Sequence record: NC_004087.1
DNA length: 32,308 nt
Reading direction: 5' to 3' (one strand)
The position numbers were made by a program, and so were the translations under genes. Of the stretch, positions 1-32,308 are shown piece after piece (positions within the stretch are counted from its first letter, which is position 1; the number at the start of each line of letters is the position of its first letter). Under the pieces are notes generated by a model. The model made no database searches. It was not told the origin of the DNA and was given only the letters and a program-made list of their open reading frames with translations.

Positions 1-59
1 TTGTAGAGNAGTAAGAAGGTATTGGGAGTTTTTTTCATTTTTTGCGTAAATTTCGCAAC

Positions 60-500
60 TAATGAGATAAATTGGAAATTCCAATTTTTTTCGTTTTTTT
101 CGTTTTTTTCGCACCAAAGTTAATAAATTGAAAATTCCTAAATTCCTAAATTCCAATTATTCTGTCATTTTGCGTAATTTTCGAAATAAAGTTAATAAAT
201 TGGAAGTTCCTAAATTCCAATTAATTCTACACCTTGTAAAATTATTCCAACAAATTAATAAAATTGGAAATTCCTAAGTTCCTAAATTCCAATAAATTCT
301 ACATCTTGGAAATTTATTACAAAAAGTTAATAAAATTGTAAATTCCAAAATTCCAATTAATTGTACATCTTGGAAAATTATTCCAATTAGTTATGTAAAT
401 TGGAAATTACAAAATTCCAAATATTCTATCATTTGTTGAAATTTATAATATAAAATTGCTTAATTGTAAATTCCTAAATTCCAAATAATTATACATTTCC
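60..500 (+). repeat. Subterminal array of imperfect ~60-70 bp direct repeats (mirrored at ~31809-32249)
   Basis: Units of type GTTAATAAA(A)TTGGAAATTCC(TAAATTCC)nAATTAATTCTACATCTTGGAAA start near 120, 191, 255, 327, 390 and 447. Confidence 0.85.
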
Positions 501-550
501 AGATATATATAAATTAGGAACTATTAAATTATTAATTAATAATTAGGAGG

Positions 551-706
551 AACCAAAACTTTTCCGTCAAAAAATTATAAATATACTAAACATATTCATA
601 TATTATAATATATTATATAATTTCCAAGTTTCTAATTTGCAAATATATAATTAATGCAAACCAAAACTTTTACGGCGGAAAATTATTAAATTACTAAACA
701 TATTCA
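551..706 (+). repeat. Imperfect ~48-bp direct repeat pair in ITR
   Basis: AACCAAAACTTTT...TACTAAACATATTCA at 551-598 and 659-706. Confidence 0.8.
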
Positions 707-1095
707 GAAATTTCACTACAGTTTTTTGCGTTTGCAATGGAGGAAATTGGAAGTTTAGAAAGAAAAGTTTAAATACTACCAGAAGACATTTAATTATAGT
801 AGTGAGGACTATCCTTCTTTTTTTTATTATTTTTTTTATTTTATTAATATTATTACAGTCGTAATATTTTGTTATTTATATATTTCTATATTATGCTAAT
901 TAGCTAATTATCATATTATATATATTAGCTAACTAGCTAGATAGTAATTATTAATTATATAATTATTTTCAGACTCAAAATAGATTGTTTTAGACTTTTT
1001 TACCGCTCCAATTGGAAGTTACAATTTTAGGTTGAGAAATGAAATAATAANTGNAAGNTGTTAAAAATCTGTTTGATTTGTTTCAGCCTAGGAAT

Positions 1096-1197
1096 AAAAA
1101 GTGGCCTCTTTAAAATATTTGGAGTGGAAAAAATTGTTTTTTTCACTTTTGTAAAAAAAAGTGGCCTTTTTTAAAAAATTGGATGTGTAAAAATTGG
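1096..1197 (+). repeat. Imperfect ~41-bp direct repeat pair in ITR
   Basis: AAAAAGTGGCCT...TTTGGA...AAAAATTG at 1096-1136 and 1156-1197, 60 bp apart. Confidence 0.75.
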
Positions 1198-1253
1198 AAT
1201 CTTCAATCTGATTCTTAAAAATTGAAAGTCGAAAANTNNAANCGTAAAAGTTG

Positions 1254-1270
1254 AGAGAAAACTTTATATA
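1254..1270 (+). promoter_or_regulatory. BRE+TATA promoter AGAGAAAACTTTATATA (ITR copy at 31039-31055)
   Basis: Purine-rich BRE followed by TTTATATA, 36 bp before the ATG at 1306. An identical 17-mer lies at 29352-29368 (minus strand). Confidence 0.8.
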
Positions 1271-1305
1271 CTAGTTTATGCATATATAAGATTGGTGAAT
1301 GAGAA

Positions 1306-1473
1306 ATGAAAAAGGAAATACAAGTTCAAGGCGTAAGATATTATGTAGAGTCAGAAGATGACTTAGTTAGCGTGGCTCACGAGTTGGCTAAGATGGGTTA
1401 CACAGTTCAACAGATAGCAAACGCTTTAGGCGTTTCAGAGAGAAAGGTACGCAGATATTTGGAGAGTTGTTAA
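1306..1473 (+). CDS. 55-aa HTH DNA-binding protein (SIRV1 ORF55/56a, SIRV2 Gp1 family); missing from ORF track
   Basis: Manual translation MKKEIQVQGVRYYVESEDDLVSVAHELAKMGYTVQQIANALGVSERKVRRYLESC. HTH signature TVQQIANALGVSERKVRRYL; GGTGA SD upstream. Confidence 0.92.
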   Translation: MKKEIQVQGVRYYVESEDDLVSVAHELAKMGYTVQQIANALGVSERKVRRYLESC

Positions 1474-1697
1474 GCTATTTATTTTTGTTTTTTTCTGCTT
1501 AAGTTCTAATTCTTATTTTTCTTAATTTTAATTTTCCTTAAATTAACTAAGACTATCAACTATTTTTTTCAAGTTTGTGATATTAATTCTAAGGGTTGAA
1601 AATATGAAGAGATAAAAAGTTAGAGAGATAGAAAGATAAAAGTTTAGAGAAAGATTTAAATAGAGAGTAATACGAAATAAAAATTGAGGCGAAAAAT

Positions 1698-1970
1698 ATG
1701 CAAGTAGAAGAAATGCAAGAAAAAGTAATTAATTTAGCTCAAAAGTATACAAATCAAAAAAGATTTTTTAGATTGATAAGAAAAAGCAATATTGCCGAAA
1801 AAATTATTAAAGAAATAAGTGAGTTTTACGGAATACGTGAAGATAATATCGAATTATTCGATAATGAAATCGAATTTATGTTTAAGAAAGAATCAGTGAA
1901 GTTAATATTGAAAAAACAAGGCAATAAATTAAAAATAGAAAATATTGAAATGACAAAATCGATTAGTTAA
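1698..1970 (+). CDS. Hypothetical 90-aa protein (ITR copy 1)
   Basis: Intact ORF, GAGG SD, AGAGAAAGATTTAAATA promoter, T-tract after stop. Confidence 0.85.
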   Translation: MQVEEMQEKVINLAQKYTNQKRFFRLIRKSNIAEKIIKEISEFYGIREDNIELFDNEIEFMFKKESVKLILKKQGNKLKIENIEMTKSIS

Positions 1971-2117
1971 ATTTCATAATTTTTTTCTTTTTCTAAATTT
2001 AGTCCAATTTATGCCGAATTTTTTTCATTTTCCAAATATTATTCCAAGAGGTTGAAAATATTGAGAGATGAAAATATAAAATTGTCATAGTTTTATCGAA
2101 AATATAGTGAGAAAAAA

Positions 2118-2426
2118 ATGGAATTTGAAGATTTAGATGTAGTTCTATATGTATTTTTTGAAAATCCAGAAATGAAAAGTTTTGAATTTGAATTTAAACA
2201 ATTATTTGAAACTACTGAGAGCGGTTTAAGATATCTGATAGGAGTTCCAGATTCAAGAAATAAAATCAAAAATAATAATGAAATTATTGAAGAATTTATA
2301 TATTATCAAAATGATGATATTGTTACTAAGTTGATATTTTATTATACTAAAGGCACGAATAGAATTTATATAAGAAAAATTTACGGCTGGAAAGAGAAAA
2401 GATTAGAGTCTGAAGATGAAGAATAA
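2118..2426 (+). CDS. acrID1: AcrID1-family anti-CRISPR protein
   Basis: N-terminus MEFEDLDVVLYVFFENPEMK resembles AcrID1 (MNYKELEKMLDVIFENSEIK, from memory). Acidic protein with a C-terminal beta-hairpin ending IYGW. TATA+TGTCATA promoter at 2073-2089. Confidence 0.75.
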   Translation: MEFEDLDVVLYVFFENPEMKSFEFEFKQLFETTESGLRYLIGVPDSRNKIKNNNEIIEEFIYYQNDDIVTKLIFYYTKGTNRIYIRKIYGWKEKRLESEDEE

Positions 2427-2476
2427 TTAATCAAAAATTTATAAAAATGTCATATATTGAAAAATTAGGTGACAAT

Positions 2477-2677
2477 ATGGTAAAAAGATTAAAAATTCTG
2501 ATAGATAATGAGTTCAGTAATCTTATAATTGAATTTAAGAGAAATGTTAAAAAAAGTTTTGAAGGTGAAGCTTTTGTTACTATTGGAATTGATGAAAACG
2601 ATAAGATATCTTATATCTCAATAGAACCGTTAGATAAAGATCTAAAAGAAGGAATAAAGAGAATTAAAGTTCTTTAA
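2477..2677 (+). CDS. 66-aa DUF2283-like protein (start moved from 2447)
   Basis: The ATG at 2447 is inside the promoter motif ATAAAAATGTCATA; a GGTGA SD at 2468-2472 precedes the ATG at 2477. The pattern KILID-x4-LIIEF...VTIGIDENDKISYISI resembles DUF2283. Confidence 0.65.
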   Translation: MVKRLKILIDNEFSNLIIEFKRNVKKSFEGEAFVTIGIDENDKISYISIEPLDKDLKEGIKRIKVL

Positions 2678-5397: not shown

Positions 5398-5568
5398 TTA
5401 ACCGTTTCTCTTTTGCAAATACTCCTTTATAGCCTCTTCAATTGCCTGAGTTAGCTGGAGATTATTTTTTGCACAATAAACTTTTAGTCTAGTCTTTAAA
5501 TCTTTATCCATATATATACCAAATACTGCTTTTTGTTTCTTTTTTTGACTCTGTTCTTGAGTTTGCAT
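5398..5568 (-). CDS. svtR: SvtR ribbon-helix-helix repressor, 56 aa; missing from ORF track
   Basis: Manual translation MQTQEQSQKKKQKAVFGIYMDKDLKTRLKVYCAKNNLQLTQAIEEAIKEYLQKRNG. GAGG SD; GTC promoter at 5594-5610. Confidence 0.93.
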   Translation of the reverse strand: MQTQEQSQKKKQKAVFGIYMDKDLKTRLKVYCAKNNLQLTQAIEEAIKEYLQKRNG

Positions 5569-26379: not shown

Positions 26380-26652
26380 TTACCGAGACCTCCAAAAATC
26401 AATTTCGATAATACAGACTTTGTTATCTTTCCAAAAATAATTAATTATTGAATGAATATTGTTTCTATATTCATAAAAATCAACTGTTCTATTTTTTTCA
26501 GCATATCTATACGTTAAATCACCATCTTTAATAATTTCTTCAAATTGATTATACGAAACTATTATTTCTTTATTTAACATTAAATTCATTCTTACTATCG
26601 TCTGATCCTGGAAAAATTTCTCAACAATTGATTTTAATTCTTCAAACTCCAT
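26380..26652 (-). CDS. acrID1: AcrID1-family protein (start MEFEEL at 26652)
   Basis: MEFEELKSIVEKFFQD...IIEIDFWR matches both AcrID1 termini; GAGGTGG SD. Confidence 0.8.
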   Translation of the reverse strand: MEFEELKSIVEKFFQDQTIVRMNLMLNKEIIVSYNQFEEIIKDGDLTYRYAEKNRTVDFYEYRNNIHSIINYFWKDNKVCIIEIDFWRSR

Positions 26653-26664
26653 TTTTACCACCTC

Positions 26665-26952
26665 TTATCTTTTCTCACGAAATAGATCAATTTCTAGAAT
26701 ATGTATAAAACCTTTTTCTTTAAAATAATAAATAATAAGTTTAACAAGTGTATTTGATAATTCATAATATACAAACTCATCTGATAATACCCAAGGATCT
26801 TTATCTACAAAAGATAGATTTGGTCTTCCTACTAATTCGTTATACTCATTTTCTGAAACTATTAAAGGTCTCTTAAAGGCTAAAGTTAACTCATTAAGAT
26901 TTTTTTCTTTAAAAAACATGTCTATAATTCGTTTAACTTTTTTCAAATTCAT
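26665..26952 (-). CDS. acrID1: AcrID1-family protein (start MNLKK at 26952)
   Basis: MNLKKVKRIIDMFFKE...ILEIDLFR. The track GTG at 26964 is part of the GGTGA SD. Confidence 0.75.
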   Translation of the reverse strand: MNLKKVKRIIDMFFKEKNLNELTLAFKRPLIVSENEYNELVGRPNLSFVDKDPWVLSDEFVYYELSNTLVKLIIYYFKEKGFIHILEIDLFREKR

Positions 26953-29937: not shown

Positions 29938-30192
29938 TTAAGATTTTTTAGTACGCCATAATTGAATTTCATATAATAAAGCTTTTTCATTATCTGCTAA
30001 CTCTTTAGTATTAATTTTTATTTCAATATTATCATTTGAAGGATAAATAAATTGACTAAATGCTAATTCAATTAATTGTTGATATTCTTCTTCATTAATT
30101 TCAAAAGAAATTTTAAATTTTAAACTTAATTCTTGTATAATAGAATCTTCAAAAAACAAATCCATAATTTTTTTAACTTCTTTAAAACTTAT
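29938..30192 (-). CDS. Cryptic AcrID1-family paralog; ATA at the expected start (track start 30165); possibly a pseudogene
   Basis: Upstream extension ISFKEVKKI-MDLFFED aligns to the AcrID1 N-terminus; C-terminus EIQLWR; GGGGA SD 7 nt before the ATA. Confidence 0.7.
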   Translation of the reverse strand: MSFKEVKKIMDLFFEDSIIQELSLKFKISFEINEEEYQQLIELAFSQFIYPSNDNIEIKINTKELADNEKALLYEIQLWRTKKS

Positions 30193-30338
30193 TTTTCTTT
30201 CCCCAATATTTTCATAAAATTATGACAATTTTATATTTTTATCATCCTATATTTTCAACCTCTAGAAATAATATCTGAAAATGAAAAAAATTCGGCATAA
30301 ATTGGACTAAATTTAGAAAAAGAAAAAAATTATGAAAT

Positions 30339-30611
30339 TTAACTAATCGATTTTGTCATTTCAATATTTTCTATTTTTAATTTATTGCCTTGTTTTTTCA
30401 ATATTAACTTCACTGATTCTTTCTTAAACATAAATTCGATTTCATTATCGAATAATTCGATATTATCTTCACGTATTCCGTAAAACTCACTTATTTCTTT
30501 AATAATTTTTTCGGCAATATTGCTTTTTCTTATCAATCTAAAAAATCTTTTTTGATTTGTATACTTTTGAGCTAAATTAATTACTTTTTCTTGCATTTCT
30601 TCTACTTGCAT
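30339..30611 (-). CDS. Hypothetical 90-aa protein (ITR copy 2)
   Basis: Identical to 1698..1970. Confidence 0.85.
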   Translation of the reverse strand: MQVEEMQEKVINLAQKYTNQKRFFRLIRKSNIAEKIIKEISEFYGIREDNIELFDNEIEFMFKKESVKLILKKQGNKLKIENIEMTKSIS

Positions 30612-30835
30612 ATTTTTCGCCTCAATTTTTATTTCGTATTACTCTCTATTTAAATCTTTCTCTAAACTTTTATCTTTCTATCTCTCTAACTTTTTATCTC
30701 TTCATATTTTCAACCCTTAGAATTAATATCACAAACTTGAAAAAAATAGTTGATAGTCTTAGTTAATTTAAGGAAAATTAAAATTAAGAAAAATAAGAAT
30801 TAGAACTTAAGCAGAAAAAAACAAAAATAAATAGC

Positions 30836-31003
30836 TTAACAACTCTCCAAATATCTGCGTACCTTTCTCTCTGAAACGCCTAAAGCGTTTGCTATCTGTT
30901 GAACTGTGTAACCCATCTTAGCCAACTCGTGAGCCACGCTAACTAAGTCATCTTCTGACTCTACATAATATCTTACGCCTTGAACTTGTATTTCCTTTTT
31001 CAT
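30836..31003 (-). CDS. 55-aa HTH protein (ITR copy 2)
   Basis: Mirror of 1306..1473. Confidence 0.92.
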   Translation of the reverse strand: MKKEIQVQGVRYYVESEDDLVSVAHELAKMGYTVQQIANALGVSERKVRRYLESC

Positions 31004-32308
31004 TTCTCATTCACCAATCTTATATATGCATAAACTAGTATATAAAGTTTTCTCTCAACTTTTACGNTTNNANTTTTCGACTTTCAATTTTTAAGAATCA
31101 GATTGAAGATTCCAATTTTTACACATCCAATTTTTTAAAAAAGGCCACTTTTTTTTACAAAAGTGAAAAAAACAATTTTTTCCACTCCAAATATTTTAAA
31201 GAGGCCACTTTTTATTCCTAGGCTGAAACAAATCAAACAGATTTTTAACANCTTNCANTTATTATTTCATTTCTCAACCTAAAATTGTAACTTCCAATTG
31301 GAGCGGTAAAAAAGTCTAAAACAATCTATTTTGAGTCTGAAAATAATTATATAATTAATAATTACTATCTAGCTAGTTAGCTAATATATATAATATGATA
31401 ATTAGCTAATTAGCATAATATAGAAATATATAAATAACAAAATATTACGACTGTAATAATATTAATAAAATAAAAAAAATAATAAAAAAAAGAAGGATAG
31501 TCCTCACTACTATAATTAAATGTCTTCTGGTAGTATTTAAACTTTTCTTTCTAAACTTCCAATTTCCTCCATTGCAAACGCAAAAAACTGTAGTGAAATT
31601 TCTGAATATGTTTAGTAATTTAATAATTTTCCGCCGTAAAAGTTTTGGTTTGCATTAATTATATATTTGCAAATTAGAAACTTGGAAATTATATAATATA
31701 TTATAATATATGAATATGTTTAGTATATTTATAATTTTTTGACGGAAAAGTTTTGGTTCCTCCTAATTATTAATTAATAATTTAATAGTTCCTAATTTAT
31801 ATATATCTGGAAATGTATAATTATTTGGAATTTAGGAATTTACAATTAAGCAATTTTATATTATAAATTTCAACAAATGATAGAATATTTGGAATTTTGT
31901 AATTTCCAATTTACATAACTAATTGGAATAATTTTCCAAGATGTACAATTAATTGGAATTTTGGAATTTACAATTTTATTAACTTTTTGTAATAAATTTC
32001 CAAGATGTAGAATTTATTGGAATTTAGGAACTTAGGAATTTCCAATTTTATTAATTTGTTGGAATAATTTTACAAGGTGTAGAATTAATTGGAATTTAGG
32101 AACTTCCAATTTATTAACTTTATTTCGAAAATTACGCAAAATGACAGAATAATTGGAATTTAGGAATTTAGGAATTTTCAATTTATTAACTTTGGTGCGA
32201 AAAAAACGAAAAAAACGAAAAAAATTGGAATTTCCAATTTATCTCATTAGTTGCGAAATTTACGCAAAAAATGAAAAAAACTCCCAATACCTTCTTACTN
32301 CTCTACAA

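Follow-up and report, generated by a model that had tools for sequence, protein, structure and literature searches.

A conserved ATA codon at the family start position of ORF75, a divergent AcrID1-family gene of SIRV1

As a dimer, the anti-CRISPR protein AcrID1 holds two Cas10d subunits in an inactive 2:4 complex, and a block of type I-D interference has been shown only for gp02 of Sulfolobus islandicus rod-shaped virus 3 (SIRV3) (PMC7689449). Other paralogs of the family, in a region of SIRV2, have been linked to resistance against I-A targeting, and the small terminal genes of SIRV2 carry highly similar regulatory sequences in front of dissimilar coding sequences (PMC11065993). Here we consider gp43 (ORF75) of SIRV1, a virus infecting a hyperthermophilic archaeon. 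The window that we analysed is a stretch of 32,308 nucleotides from sequence record NC_004087.1, in which ORF75 occupies positions 29938-30165 of the minus strand, is the first gene inward of the right inverted terminal repeat (ITR), and adjoins ORF98 and homologs of AcrIIIB1. On profile scores and a predicted fold, ORF75 belongs to AcrID1/DUF1374, a family of small anti-defence proteins in rudiviruses, of which it is a divergent member. The codon in the position of the family's start is an old ATA, and the DNA in front of it belongs to a module shared with paralogous genes. We regard the gene's identity, the old age of its ATA and the explanation by a shared module, taken jointly, as very probable. 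Family membership is already on record, and the shared regulatory module has been published in general terms.

The reading frame and the codons that have been annotated or proposed as its start, with or without a Shine-Dalgarno (SD) sequence, are as follows:

29938..30192, minus strand: 84 codons and a stop, counted from the ATA; contains the annotated ORF75/gp43 (29938-30165, 75 aa)
30190..30192, minus strand: ATA codon in the column of the family's initiator Met, placed by the family alignment and the orthologs
30163..30165, minus strand: annotated ORF75 ATG, codon 10; without a nearby SD and present only in this SIRV1 isolate (ATA in the other four orthologs)
30157..30159, minus strand: TTG, codon 12; annotated "ORF73" start in SIRV2 and in one SIRV1 variant, kept in all five orthologs and without an SD

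Translation of the minus strand reads TAA (30222-30220) FYENIGERK-I(ATA)-SFKEVKKI-M(30165). A preliminary description of this DNA had the frame open for nine codons upstream of the annotated ATG. The frame is open, but it extends 18 codons above the ATG, as far as the TAA, and the ATA is the ninth of these. Re-reading of the sequence bore out what else had been said of the gene's two ends: the ATA stands in the Met column, 7 nt past a GGGGA SD at 30204-30200 and with an in-frame TAA upstream, and the product ends in EIQLWR. Among the genes of the window, only ORF75 has a near-cognate codon at an SD-defined start. The distance from the SD to ATG10 and TTG12 is 34-40 nt, and neither of these codons is preceded by an SD-like sequence.

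Both curated family profiles recognize the product. The 84-aa form scores 66.2 bits on NCBIfam AcrID1_fam (NF033952; cut-off 30 bits) over profile positions 2-93, and the 75-aa form scores 56.6 bits over positions 9-93; on Pfam PF07118 (DUF1374; cut-off 21 bits), the respective scores are 38.6 and 31.9 bits. The longer form thus outscores the shorter one on either profile, as the proposed extension would lead one to expect, and the nine extra codons, which match positions 2-8 of the AcrID1 profile, add 9.6 bits there. Six-frame translation of the window gives exactly four reading frames that match the family profile, in agreement with the earlier claim that ORF75 is a paralog of AcrID1. Likewise, the claimed alignment of the extension with the N-termini of the other family genes was reproduced: the 84-aa product aligns from residue 1 with ORF102 (2118), a 90-aa gene (26652), and a 95-aa gene (26952) at 23-30% identity. 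The positions of these paralogs are given below, with the ratio of non-synonymous to synonymous substitution rates written as dN/dS or omega:

2118..2426, plus strand: ORF102/gp03, AcrID1-family paralog with an ATG start, under purifying selection (dN/dS 0.10-0.37)
26380..26952, minus strand: gp37 (26380-26652) and gp38 (26665-26952), tandem AcrID1-family paralogs

In a family alignment of 17 sequences, all 12 that lie outside the ORF75 group have Met in the column of the ATA-encoded Ile. An AlphaFold2 model of the 84-aa product on this alignment has a predicted local distance difference test (pLDDT) score of 81.7 and a predicted template modelling (pTM) score of 0.67; the fold is a prediction, and AcrID1 itself was included in the input alignment. 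The best match of the model in the PDB by Foldseek is 6exp_A, the crystal structure of SIRV3 AcrID1 with its order of helix, strands, helix, strands (TM 0.79, root-mean-square deviation 1.7 A, E 6.7e-5, probability 1.00), which accords with the kinship first proposed. The first predicted helix comprises residues 3-15, and more than half of it is therefore encoded by the nine extra codons. ORF75 is also a small gene in the variable near-terminal region of its genome, the setting by which family members in rudiviruses and lipothrixviruses are recognized. To call the gene hidden was an overstatement, as the 75-aa protein exceeds both cut-offs and has a precomputed PF07118 hit. RefSeq names SIRV3 gp42, an ORF75 ortholog, "AcrID1 family anti-CRISPR protein", and the SIRV1 and SIRV2 records alone keep "hypothetical protein" for the ORF75-type gene.

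The closest comparison is with AcrID1 itself (SIRV3 gp02; PDB 6EXP, and 6THH with Cas10d). The two share the curated profile family and the predicted fold, both lie in a neighbourhood of small genes close to a rudivirus terminus, and residues 1-44 of ORF75 are 36% identical to gp02 (BLASTP, E 4e-8). They also share a leader of 16 nt, TTGGGGAAAGAAAAAT, which in the validated acrID1 is followed by a G that completes an ATG. The sequence before SIRV3 gp02 is TTGGGGAAAGAAAAATG, that before ORF75 and its orthologs is TTGGGGAAAGAAAAATA, and that in SIRV2 is TTGAGGAGAGAAAAATA. Of all the evidence on the start, this leader weighs most; with the identity over the first 44 residues, it shows that the ancestor of ORF75 had an ATG behind this SD and that its third base changed. 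ORF75 differs from gp02 in having ATA for ATG, in being 12 residues shorter in the middle, and in its core promoter, which is of the GTC type, whereas gp02 has an early promoter with a TFB-recognition element (BRE) and TTTAWATA. The elements around the start are these:

30191..30206, minus strand: SD-containing 16-nt leader TTGGGGAAAGAAAAAT, including GGGGA at 30200-30204; identical to the SIRV3 gp02 leader
30221..30239, minus strand: core promoter AAAATATAAAATTGTCATA, made up of a TATA box and, after it, the "GTC" element of rudiviruses
30189..30215, minus strand: upstream open reading frame (uORF) of eight codons, ATG..TAA (MKILGKEK*), in another frame; its stop overlaps the ATA (A-TAA)
30164..30198, minus strand: 35-nt run of spacer, ATA and codons 1-9, invariant in all five orthologs

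The 12-residue gap (36 bp) relative to all paralogs falls between residues 46 and 47 of the 84-aa product, at about 30052-30057 on the minus strand, and is a multiple of 12 bp. Indels of 12 bp are said to have been described by Peng et al. in 2004 as a mode of variation among SIRV1 variants.

Orthologs of ORF75 are found in SIRV1 variant XX (ORF96), SIRV3 (gp42, 96 aa), SIRV2 (gp50/ORF73), and the SIRV1 variant fragment AJ703805 (ORF73). They are 92-98% identical in nucleotide sequence, with the same ATA, the same leader, and the same gene order beside ORF98; ORF75 of the window differs from them in possessing ATG10, in keeping the family residue Trp79, and in its annotated start. ATA stands at the family start codon in all five lineages, so that none of the five has a canonical start codon at the family N-terminus. 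As this exact genome is represented by one SIRV1 isolate sequence, a sequencing error in the record, with ATG as the true codon, could be imagined. The other isolates leave this idea next to no probability, since ATA is also read in variant XX, AJ703805, SIRV2, and SIRV3, as well as in SRA and genome contigs of SIRV2 and SIRV3 that were assembled independently. These comparisons show that ATA has been at the ancestral start since before the divergence of these viruses. The difference between ATG and ATA, like the other differences between the ORF75 and ORF102 types, is common to the orthologs and is therefore older than the split of SIRV1, SIRV2, and SIRV3.

Further orthologs that might carry an ATG were sought in three sources: IMG/VR returned the window itself only, two JGI metagenome scans returned none, and GTDB genomes returned only SIRV3-identical contaminant contigs. 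In the ORF75 region, the contigs that encode SIRV3 and SIRV2 proteins do not differ from the two viruses. SIRV3-identical contigs occur in the bacterial assemblies of Planomonospora alba JCM 9373 (31,951 bp), Streptomyces gamaensis CGMCC 4.7304, and GCA_016415665, as well as in several SRA assemblies. Such occurrences look like contamination or carry-over, and they explain the RefSeq name "MULTISPECIES: AcrID1 family anti-CRISPR protein [Bacteria]".

Four different starts have been annotated for this one orthologous gene (75, 73, 73, and 96 aa), none of them at the family N-terminus, and public records use three different product names for it. For the 96-aa annotations, the start is a TTG that lies 12 codons farther upstream, within the promoter motif, where the frame is open only if TAT replaces TAA/TAG. 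It could be that translation begins only downstream of the ATA, at the SIRV1-specific ATG at 30165 (75 aa) and elsewhere at TTG codon 12 (73 aa), with codons 1-9 forming a 5' leader. Such starts are the ones used in GenBank records, TTG12 is conserved in all five orthologs, and the 75-aa form is recognized by both families. Nevertheless, neither codon has an SD at its own distance, the ATG is missing in four of the five orthologs, and the products would lack half or nearly all of the predicted helix 3-15. In addition, TTG12 encodes a hydrophobic residue of this helix that is V or M in the paralogs, and codons 1-9 match the family profile with a gain in score. We therefore regard exclusive use of the downstream codons as improbable.

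The start position can be fixed at the ATA because three observations converge there: the family alignment, the 16-nt leader of acrID1, and the usual spacing of promoter, SD, and start in SIRV genes. The "GTC" promoter element is known in rudiviruses (PMC5569661, citing Kessler 2004), and the motif AAAATATAAAATTGTCATA is matched 12 times in the window with at most three mismatches, against 0.63 expected. Start codons of SIRV1 that stand behind an SD lie approximately 24-35 nt past GTCATA, and the ATA lies at 28 nt. From the usual archaeal distance between TATA box and start, the 5' end of the ORF75 transcript would be near TTGGGG (~30206). A promoter and terminator scan of the sigma-70 type was set aside as unsuited to archaea. 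The 12 sites of the motif, of the form ATATAAAAWTGTCATA, include 2071, 6401, 8829, 16118, 27006, 28379, and 30239. Two core promoter types, GTC and early BRE/TTTAWATA, are found with the common distal sequence TTTTTYTCA..ATATTA.TTC.A.GGTTGAAAA.

The uORF invites another explanation, in which its translation is coupled to that of ORF75. With its ATG at 30215-30213, ribosomes might re-initiate at the AUA after the overlapping UAA, or a -1 slip at GAA-AAA-UAA might fuse MKILGKEK to the main frame. Both the ATG and the frame of the uORF are kept in all five orthologs, ATC replaces the ATG before ORF102-type genes, and the stop overlaps the ATA (A-UAA). On the other hand, promoter geometry and the analogy with gp02 place the uORF ATG probably upstream of the transcription start. 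A chance in-frame ATG within 28 AT-rich bases has, by a rough estimate, a probability of ~0.1, and the whole stretch is conserved in any case. Coupling through the uORF thus appears highly unlikely.

The DNA between the ATA and the ITR raises the question of its origin, for which the following elements are needed:

30277..32308, no strand assigned: right ITR; its identity with 1-2032 stops inside the regulatory module
30193..30276, minus strand: upstream regulatory module, the part outside the perfect ITR, earlier described as decayed ITR
2033..2117, plus strand: ORF102-type version of the module, orthologous to the sequence upstream of SIRV2 gp10 (75/85)

The two genome ends are identical without gaps over 2032 nt (1..2032 and 30277..32308), compared with 2026 nt in the GenBank annotation. 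Past the ITR the two sides remain alike as far as the ORF102 start if a single 1-nt indel is allowed, and ATG 2118-2120 then lies opposite ATA 30192-30190. Over the 85 nt ahead of the start, left and right agree at 71 of 86 aligned positions, and in shuffled sequence the agreement averages 0.53 and does not exceed 0.61; the homology of about 90 bp past the ITR that had been noticed earlier is therefore real. The preliminary description took these 85-90 nt for the decayed inner part of a longer ITR that once carried acrID1 at both ends and whose right copy diverged and lost its ATG. In favour of this view, the match starts exactly where the perfect ITR ends and forms the strongest promoter pair in the window (83%), and relatives do have a family gene in the ITR region at both ends, namely SIRV3 gp02/gp44 and pairs in variant XX and SIRV2 (PMC11065993 Supplementary Data 1).

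However, the same two upstream types exist in SIRV2, where neither is beside an ITR. The SIRV2 ortholog of ORF102 is gp10 (88.7% identity with the upstream sequence counted in), which lies in the genome interior at 5562, the first annotated SIRV2 genes being at 1138-1943. SIRV2 gp10 and gp50 each keep their own upstream version away from the termini, with a mutual identity of 73/86. As the two versions are about equally alike in SIRV2 and in SIRV1, their likeness is independent of ITR adjacency, and the similarity is not specific to the termini. The ORF102 type reads ...TTGAGAGATG...ATCGAAAATATAGTGAG...ATG and the ORF75 type ...TAGAGTGATA...ATGAAAATATTGRGGA...ATA, and these differences, ATG versus ATA among them, predate the SIRV1 ITR. 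Moreover, the proteins of ORF75 and ORF102 are ~26% identical and their upstream DNA 83%; uniform decay of a repeat is insufficient to produce such a disparity, for which selection on a regulatory module is sufficient, and the promoter motif recurs 12 times in the genome. A decayed ITR, against which the orthologs of both SIRV2 and SIRV3 speak, is accordingly very improbable, and neither a former ITR gene pair nor a loss of the ATG from its right member can be upheld. Comparison of these sequences shows instead that the ~85-nt match is a promoter and leader module shared by paralogous genes and kept by selection, and that the ITR ends inside it. At the inner edge of the SIRV1 ITR, the final 55 nt agree best with the upstream sequence of SIRV3 gp42 (47/56), whereas ORF102-type orthologs agree at 37-41/56. 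Most simply, the two paralogous modules would have recombined at what is now the ITR boundary, leaving sequence of the ORF75 type on the ITR side.

In its distal half, the module is like the early-gene module that precedes ORF90, ORF112, and SIRV3 gp02. In this respect, ORF75 and ORF102 are similar to the terminal genes with shared regulatory sequences described by Bhoobalan-Chitty et al. in 2024 (PMC11065993), in that their upstream DNA is highly similar and their coding sequences are barely alike. They differ from the early-motif genes of that study in being unlisted there and in having a core promoter of the general GTC type.

How the gene is expressed can be stated with less assurance. Our tentative preference, held at somewhat less than an even chance, is that weak SD-directed initiation at AUA yields the full 84-aa protein with the AcrID1 fold. 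The mRNA would start near the TTGGGG, the SD would set the ribosome on the AUA, and initiation there with the initiator tRNA would be inefficient. The outcome would be a low level of the 84-aa protein, the first helix of which needs the nine extra codons. For this isolate alone, a shorter product of 75 aa without half of that helix could also arise from the new AUG at codon 10. It is possible, by analogy with AcrID1, that the product targets Cas10d, or it may act on another component of host defence. A precedent is the AUU of bacterial infC, a conserved near-cognate start that holds expression low. ORF75 is comparable in having a near-cognate codon at an SD-defined start that is conserved across orthologs, but it differs in that it belongs to an archaeal virus, that its AUA is a candidate start, and that no feedback mechanism is known. 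Ribosome profiling in Haloferax placed ~30% of putative alternative initiation sites at near-cognate codons (PMC7261190). The searchable literature yielded no ribosome profiling, proteomics, or reporter data for SIRV, nor any published description of the conserved ATA, the acrID1-identical leader, or an ITR boundary inside the module.

Several observations weigh against initiation at the AUA. We know of no demonstration of AUA initiation in Sulfolobales. The ORF75 group lacks 12 central residues relative to the family, and the conserved C-terminal W/F-R of the family, present in the window as W79-R80, has lost its Trp to L or V in four of the five orthologs. Between them, the orthologs differ by ~20 non-synonymous and 7 synonymous substitutions, corresponding to an omega of ~0.6 with a 95% confidence interval of 0.24-1.65; for the ATG-bearing paralogs and ORF98, omega is 0.09-0.37 (0.10-0.37 for ORF102 orthologs and 0.09-0.32 for ORF98, ORF95, and the 26652 gene). 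Taken as a pair, SIRV1 and SIRV2 depart significantly from paralogs and neighbour in how non-synonymous changes compare with synonymous ones (Fisher p = 0.013), and variable sites are spread evenly over the three codon positions (8:9:10). The intact frame is weak evidence of translation, given that a frame hit by 27 random substitutions would stay free of stops with a probability of 0.22. Deletion of SIRV2 gp50 is tolerated in a CRISPR-null host (PMC6315595), and SIRV1gp43, SIRV2gp50 (NP_666584), and BHS13_gp42 are absent from the early-motif anti-defence genes of PMC11065993 Supplementary Data 1.

Much of this would also be expected of a relic. In that case, the change from ATG to ATA would have inactivated the gene in the ancestor of the five lineages, leaving an untranslated but undecayed cassette, the copies of which were kept young by recombination among co-circulating rudiviruses. 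The want of a conserved canonical start with an SD, for which annotators chose four different codons, fits such a history, as do an omega whose interval includes 1, the even spread of variable sites, the aberrant substitution ratio, the internal deletion, the missing Trp, and the dispensability of gp50. Mosaic evolution is also in evidence, for SIRV1 and variant XX are identical in ORF252 and different in ORF98 and ORF75, and mosaic recombination may be the cause of the low synonymous divergence (dS).

Conservation nonetheless speaks against a relic in several respects. From core promoter to stop (29938-30240), the genomes are 92-98% identical, compared with 87-93% for ORF98 (100% in one near-identical pair) and 41-75% for most flanks; the block is thus better conserved among SIRV1, SIRV2, and SIRV3 than ORF98, the essential neighbouring gene that encodes the pyramid protein. 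The non-synonymous divergence (dN) of ORF75 orthologs, 0.02-0.07, is like that of functional paralogs, and their dS is low (0.01-0.15 versus 0.2-0.5), which is unlike an old pseudogene. The frame has remained open in all five lineages, without indels or stops. The spacer and codons 1-9 are invariant over the 35-nt run, in which ~4.2 variable sites would be expected at the density of codons 10-84 (P(0) ~0.015). Furthermore, a single A-to-G reversion would restore the start, so that the loss would not be irreversible, which counts against a relic. On balance, a relic is unlikely, though it carries appreciable weight.

Synonymous divergence of the ORF75 block is 3-10 times below that of neighbouring genes. 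An overlapping function that might account for this was looked for, but no other frame is open in the five orthologs and no Rfam match was obtained. Integrity of the reading frame as proof of selection was rejected as weak on the stop probability given above, and dN/dS as proof of decay was rejected on its confidence interval. If initiation at the AUA is preferred, it may be asked further whether a functional AcrID1-fold paralog is deliberately kept at low dose by an AUA placed behind the full-strength SD of the acrID1 leader across SIRV1, SIRV2, and SIRV3. This stronger proposition remains rather doubtful in our judgement.

Some other genes of the window deserve mention. ORF90a/c (gp02/gp44) are listed as "AcrID1" in PMC11065993 Supplementary Data 1 and lie inside the ITR at 1698-1970 (plus strand) and 30339-30611 (minus strand). 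Pfam, NCBIfam, and hhalign detected no AcrID1-family similarity in them, and they could not be confirmed by these means as a further paralog. The annotated ATG of ORF76/gp04 (2447) is located inside the gene's own promoter motif, AAAAATGTCATA (window 2436-2480, plus strand); judging from the sequence, a start at ATG 2477 after the SD GGTGA, giving 66 aa, is likelier. On the minus strand, ORF112 is annotated from 27440, directly past a TATA-like box, and has been amended to 27404, and ORF252 is annotated from 29327 and has been amended to 29318 (PMC11065993).

With the family alignment, the acrID1 leader, and promoter geometry, the discordant annotations can be brought to a single N-terminus, a correction that is small but tangible. 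Were the AUA in use, ORF75 would provide a testable case of near-cognate initiation in Sulfolobales, where the rules of start-codon choice are poorly mapped, and would reveal how a virus regulates the amount of one AcrID1 paralog among many. Should the low-dose proposition be true, ORF75 would have the first near-cognate start to be documented in any crenarchaeal virus and would exemplify translational tuning of an anti-defence gene. If the gene is a relic, it would show how anti-CRISPR paralogs are retired. Finally, an ITR boundary inside a module that recurs at both genome ends points to such modules as recombination substrates that reshape rudivirus termini.

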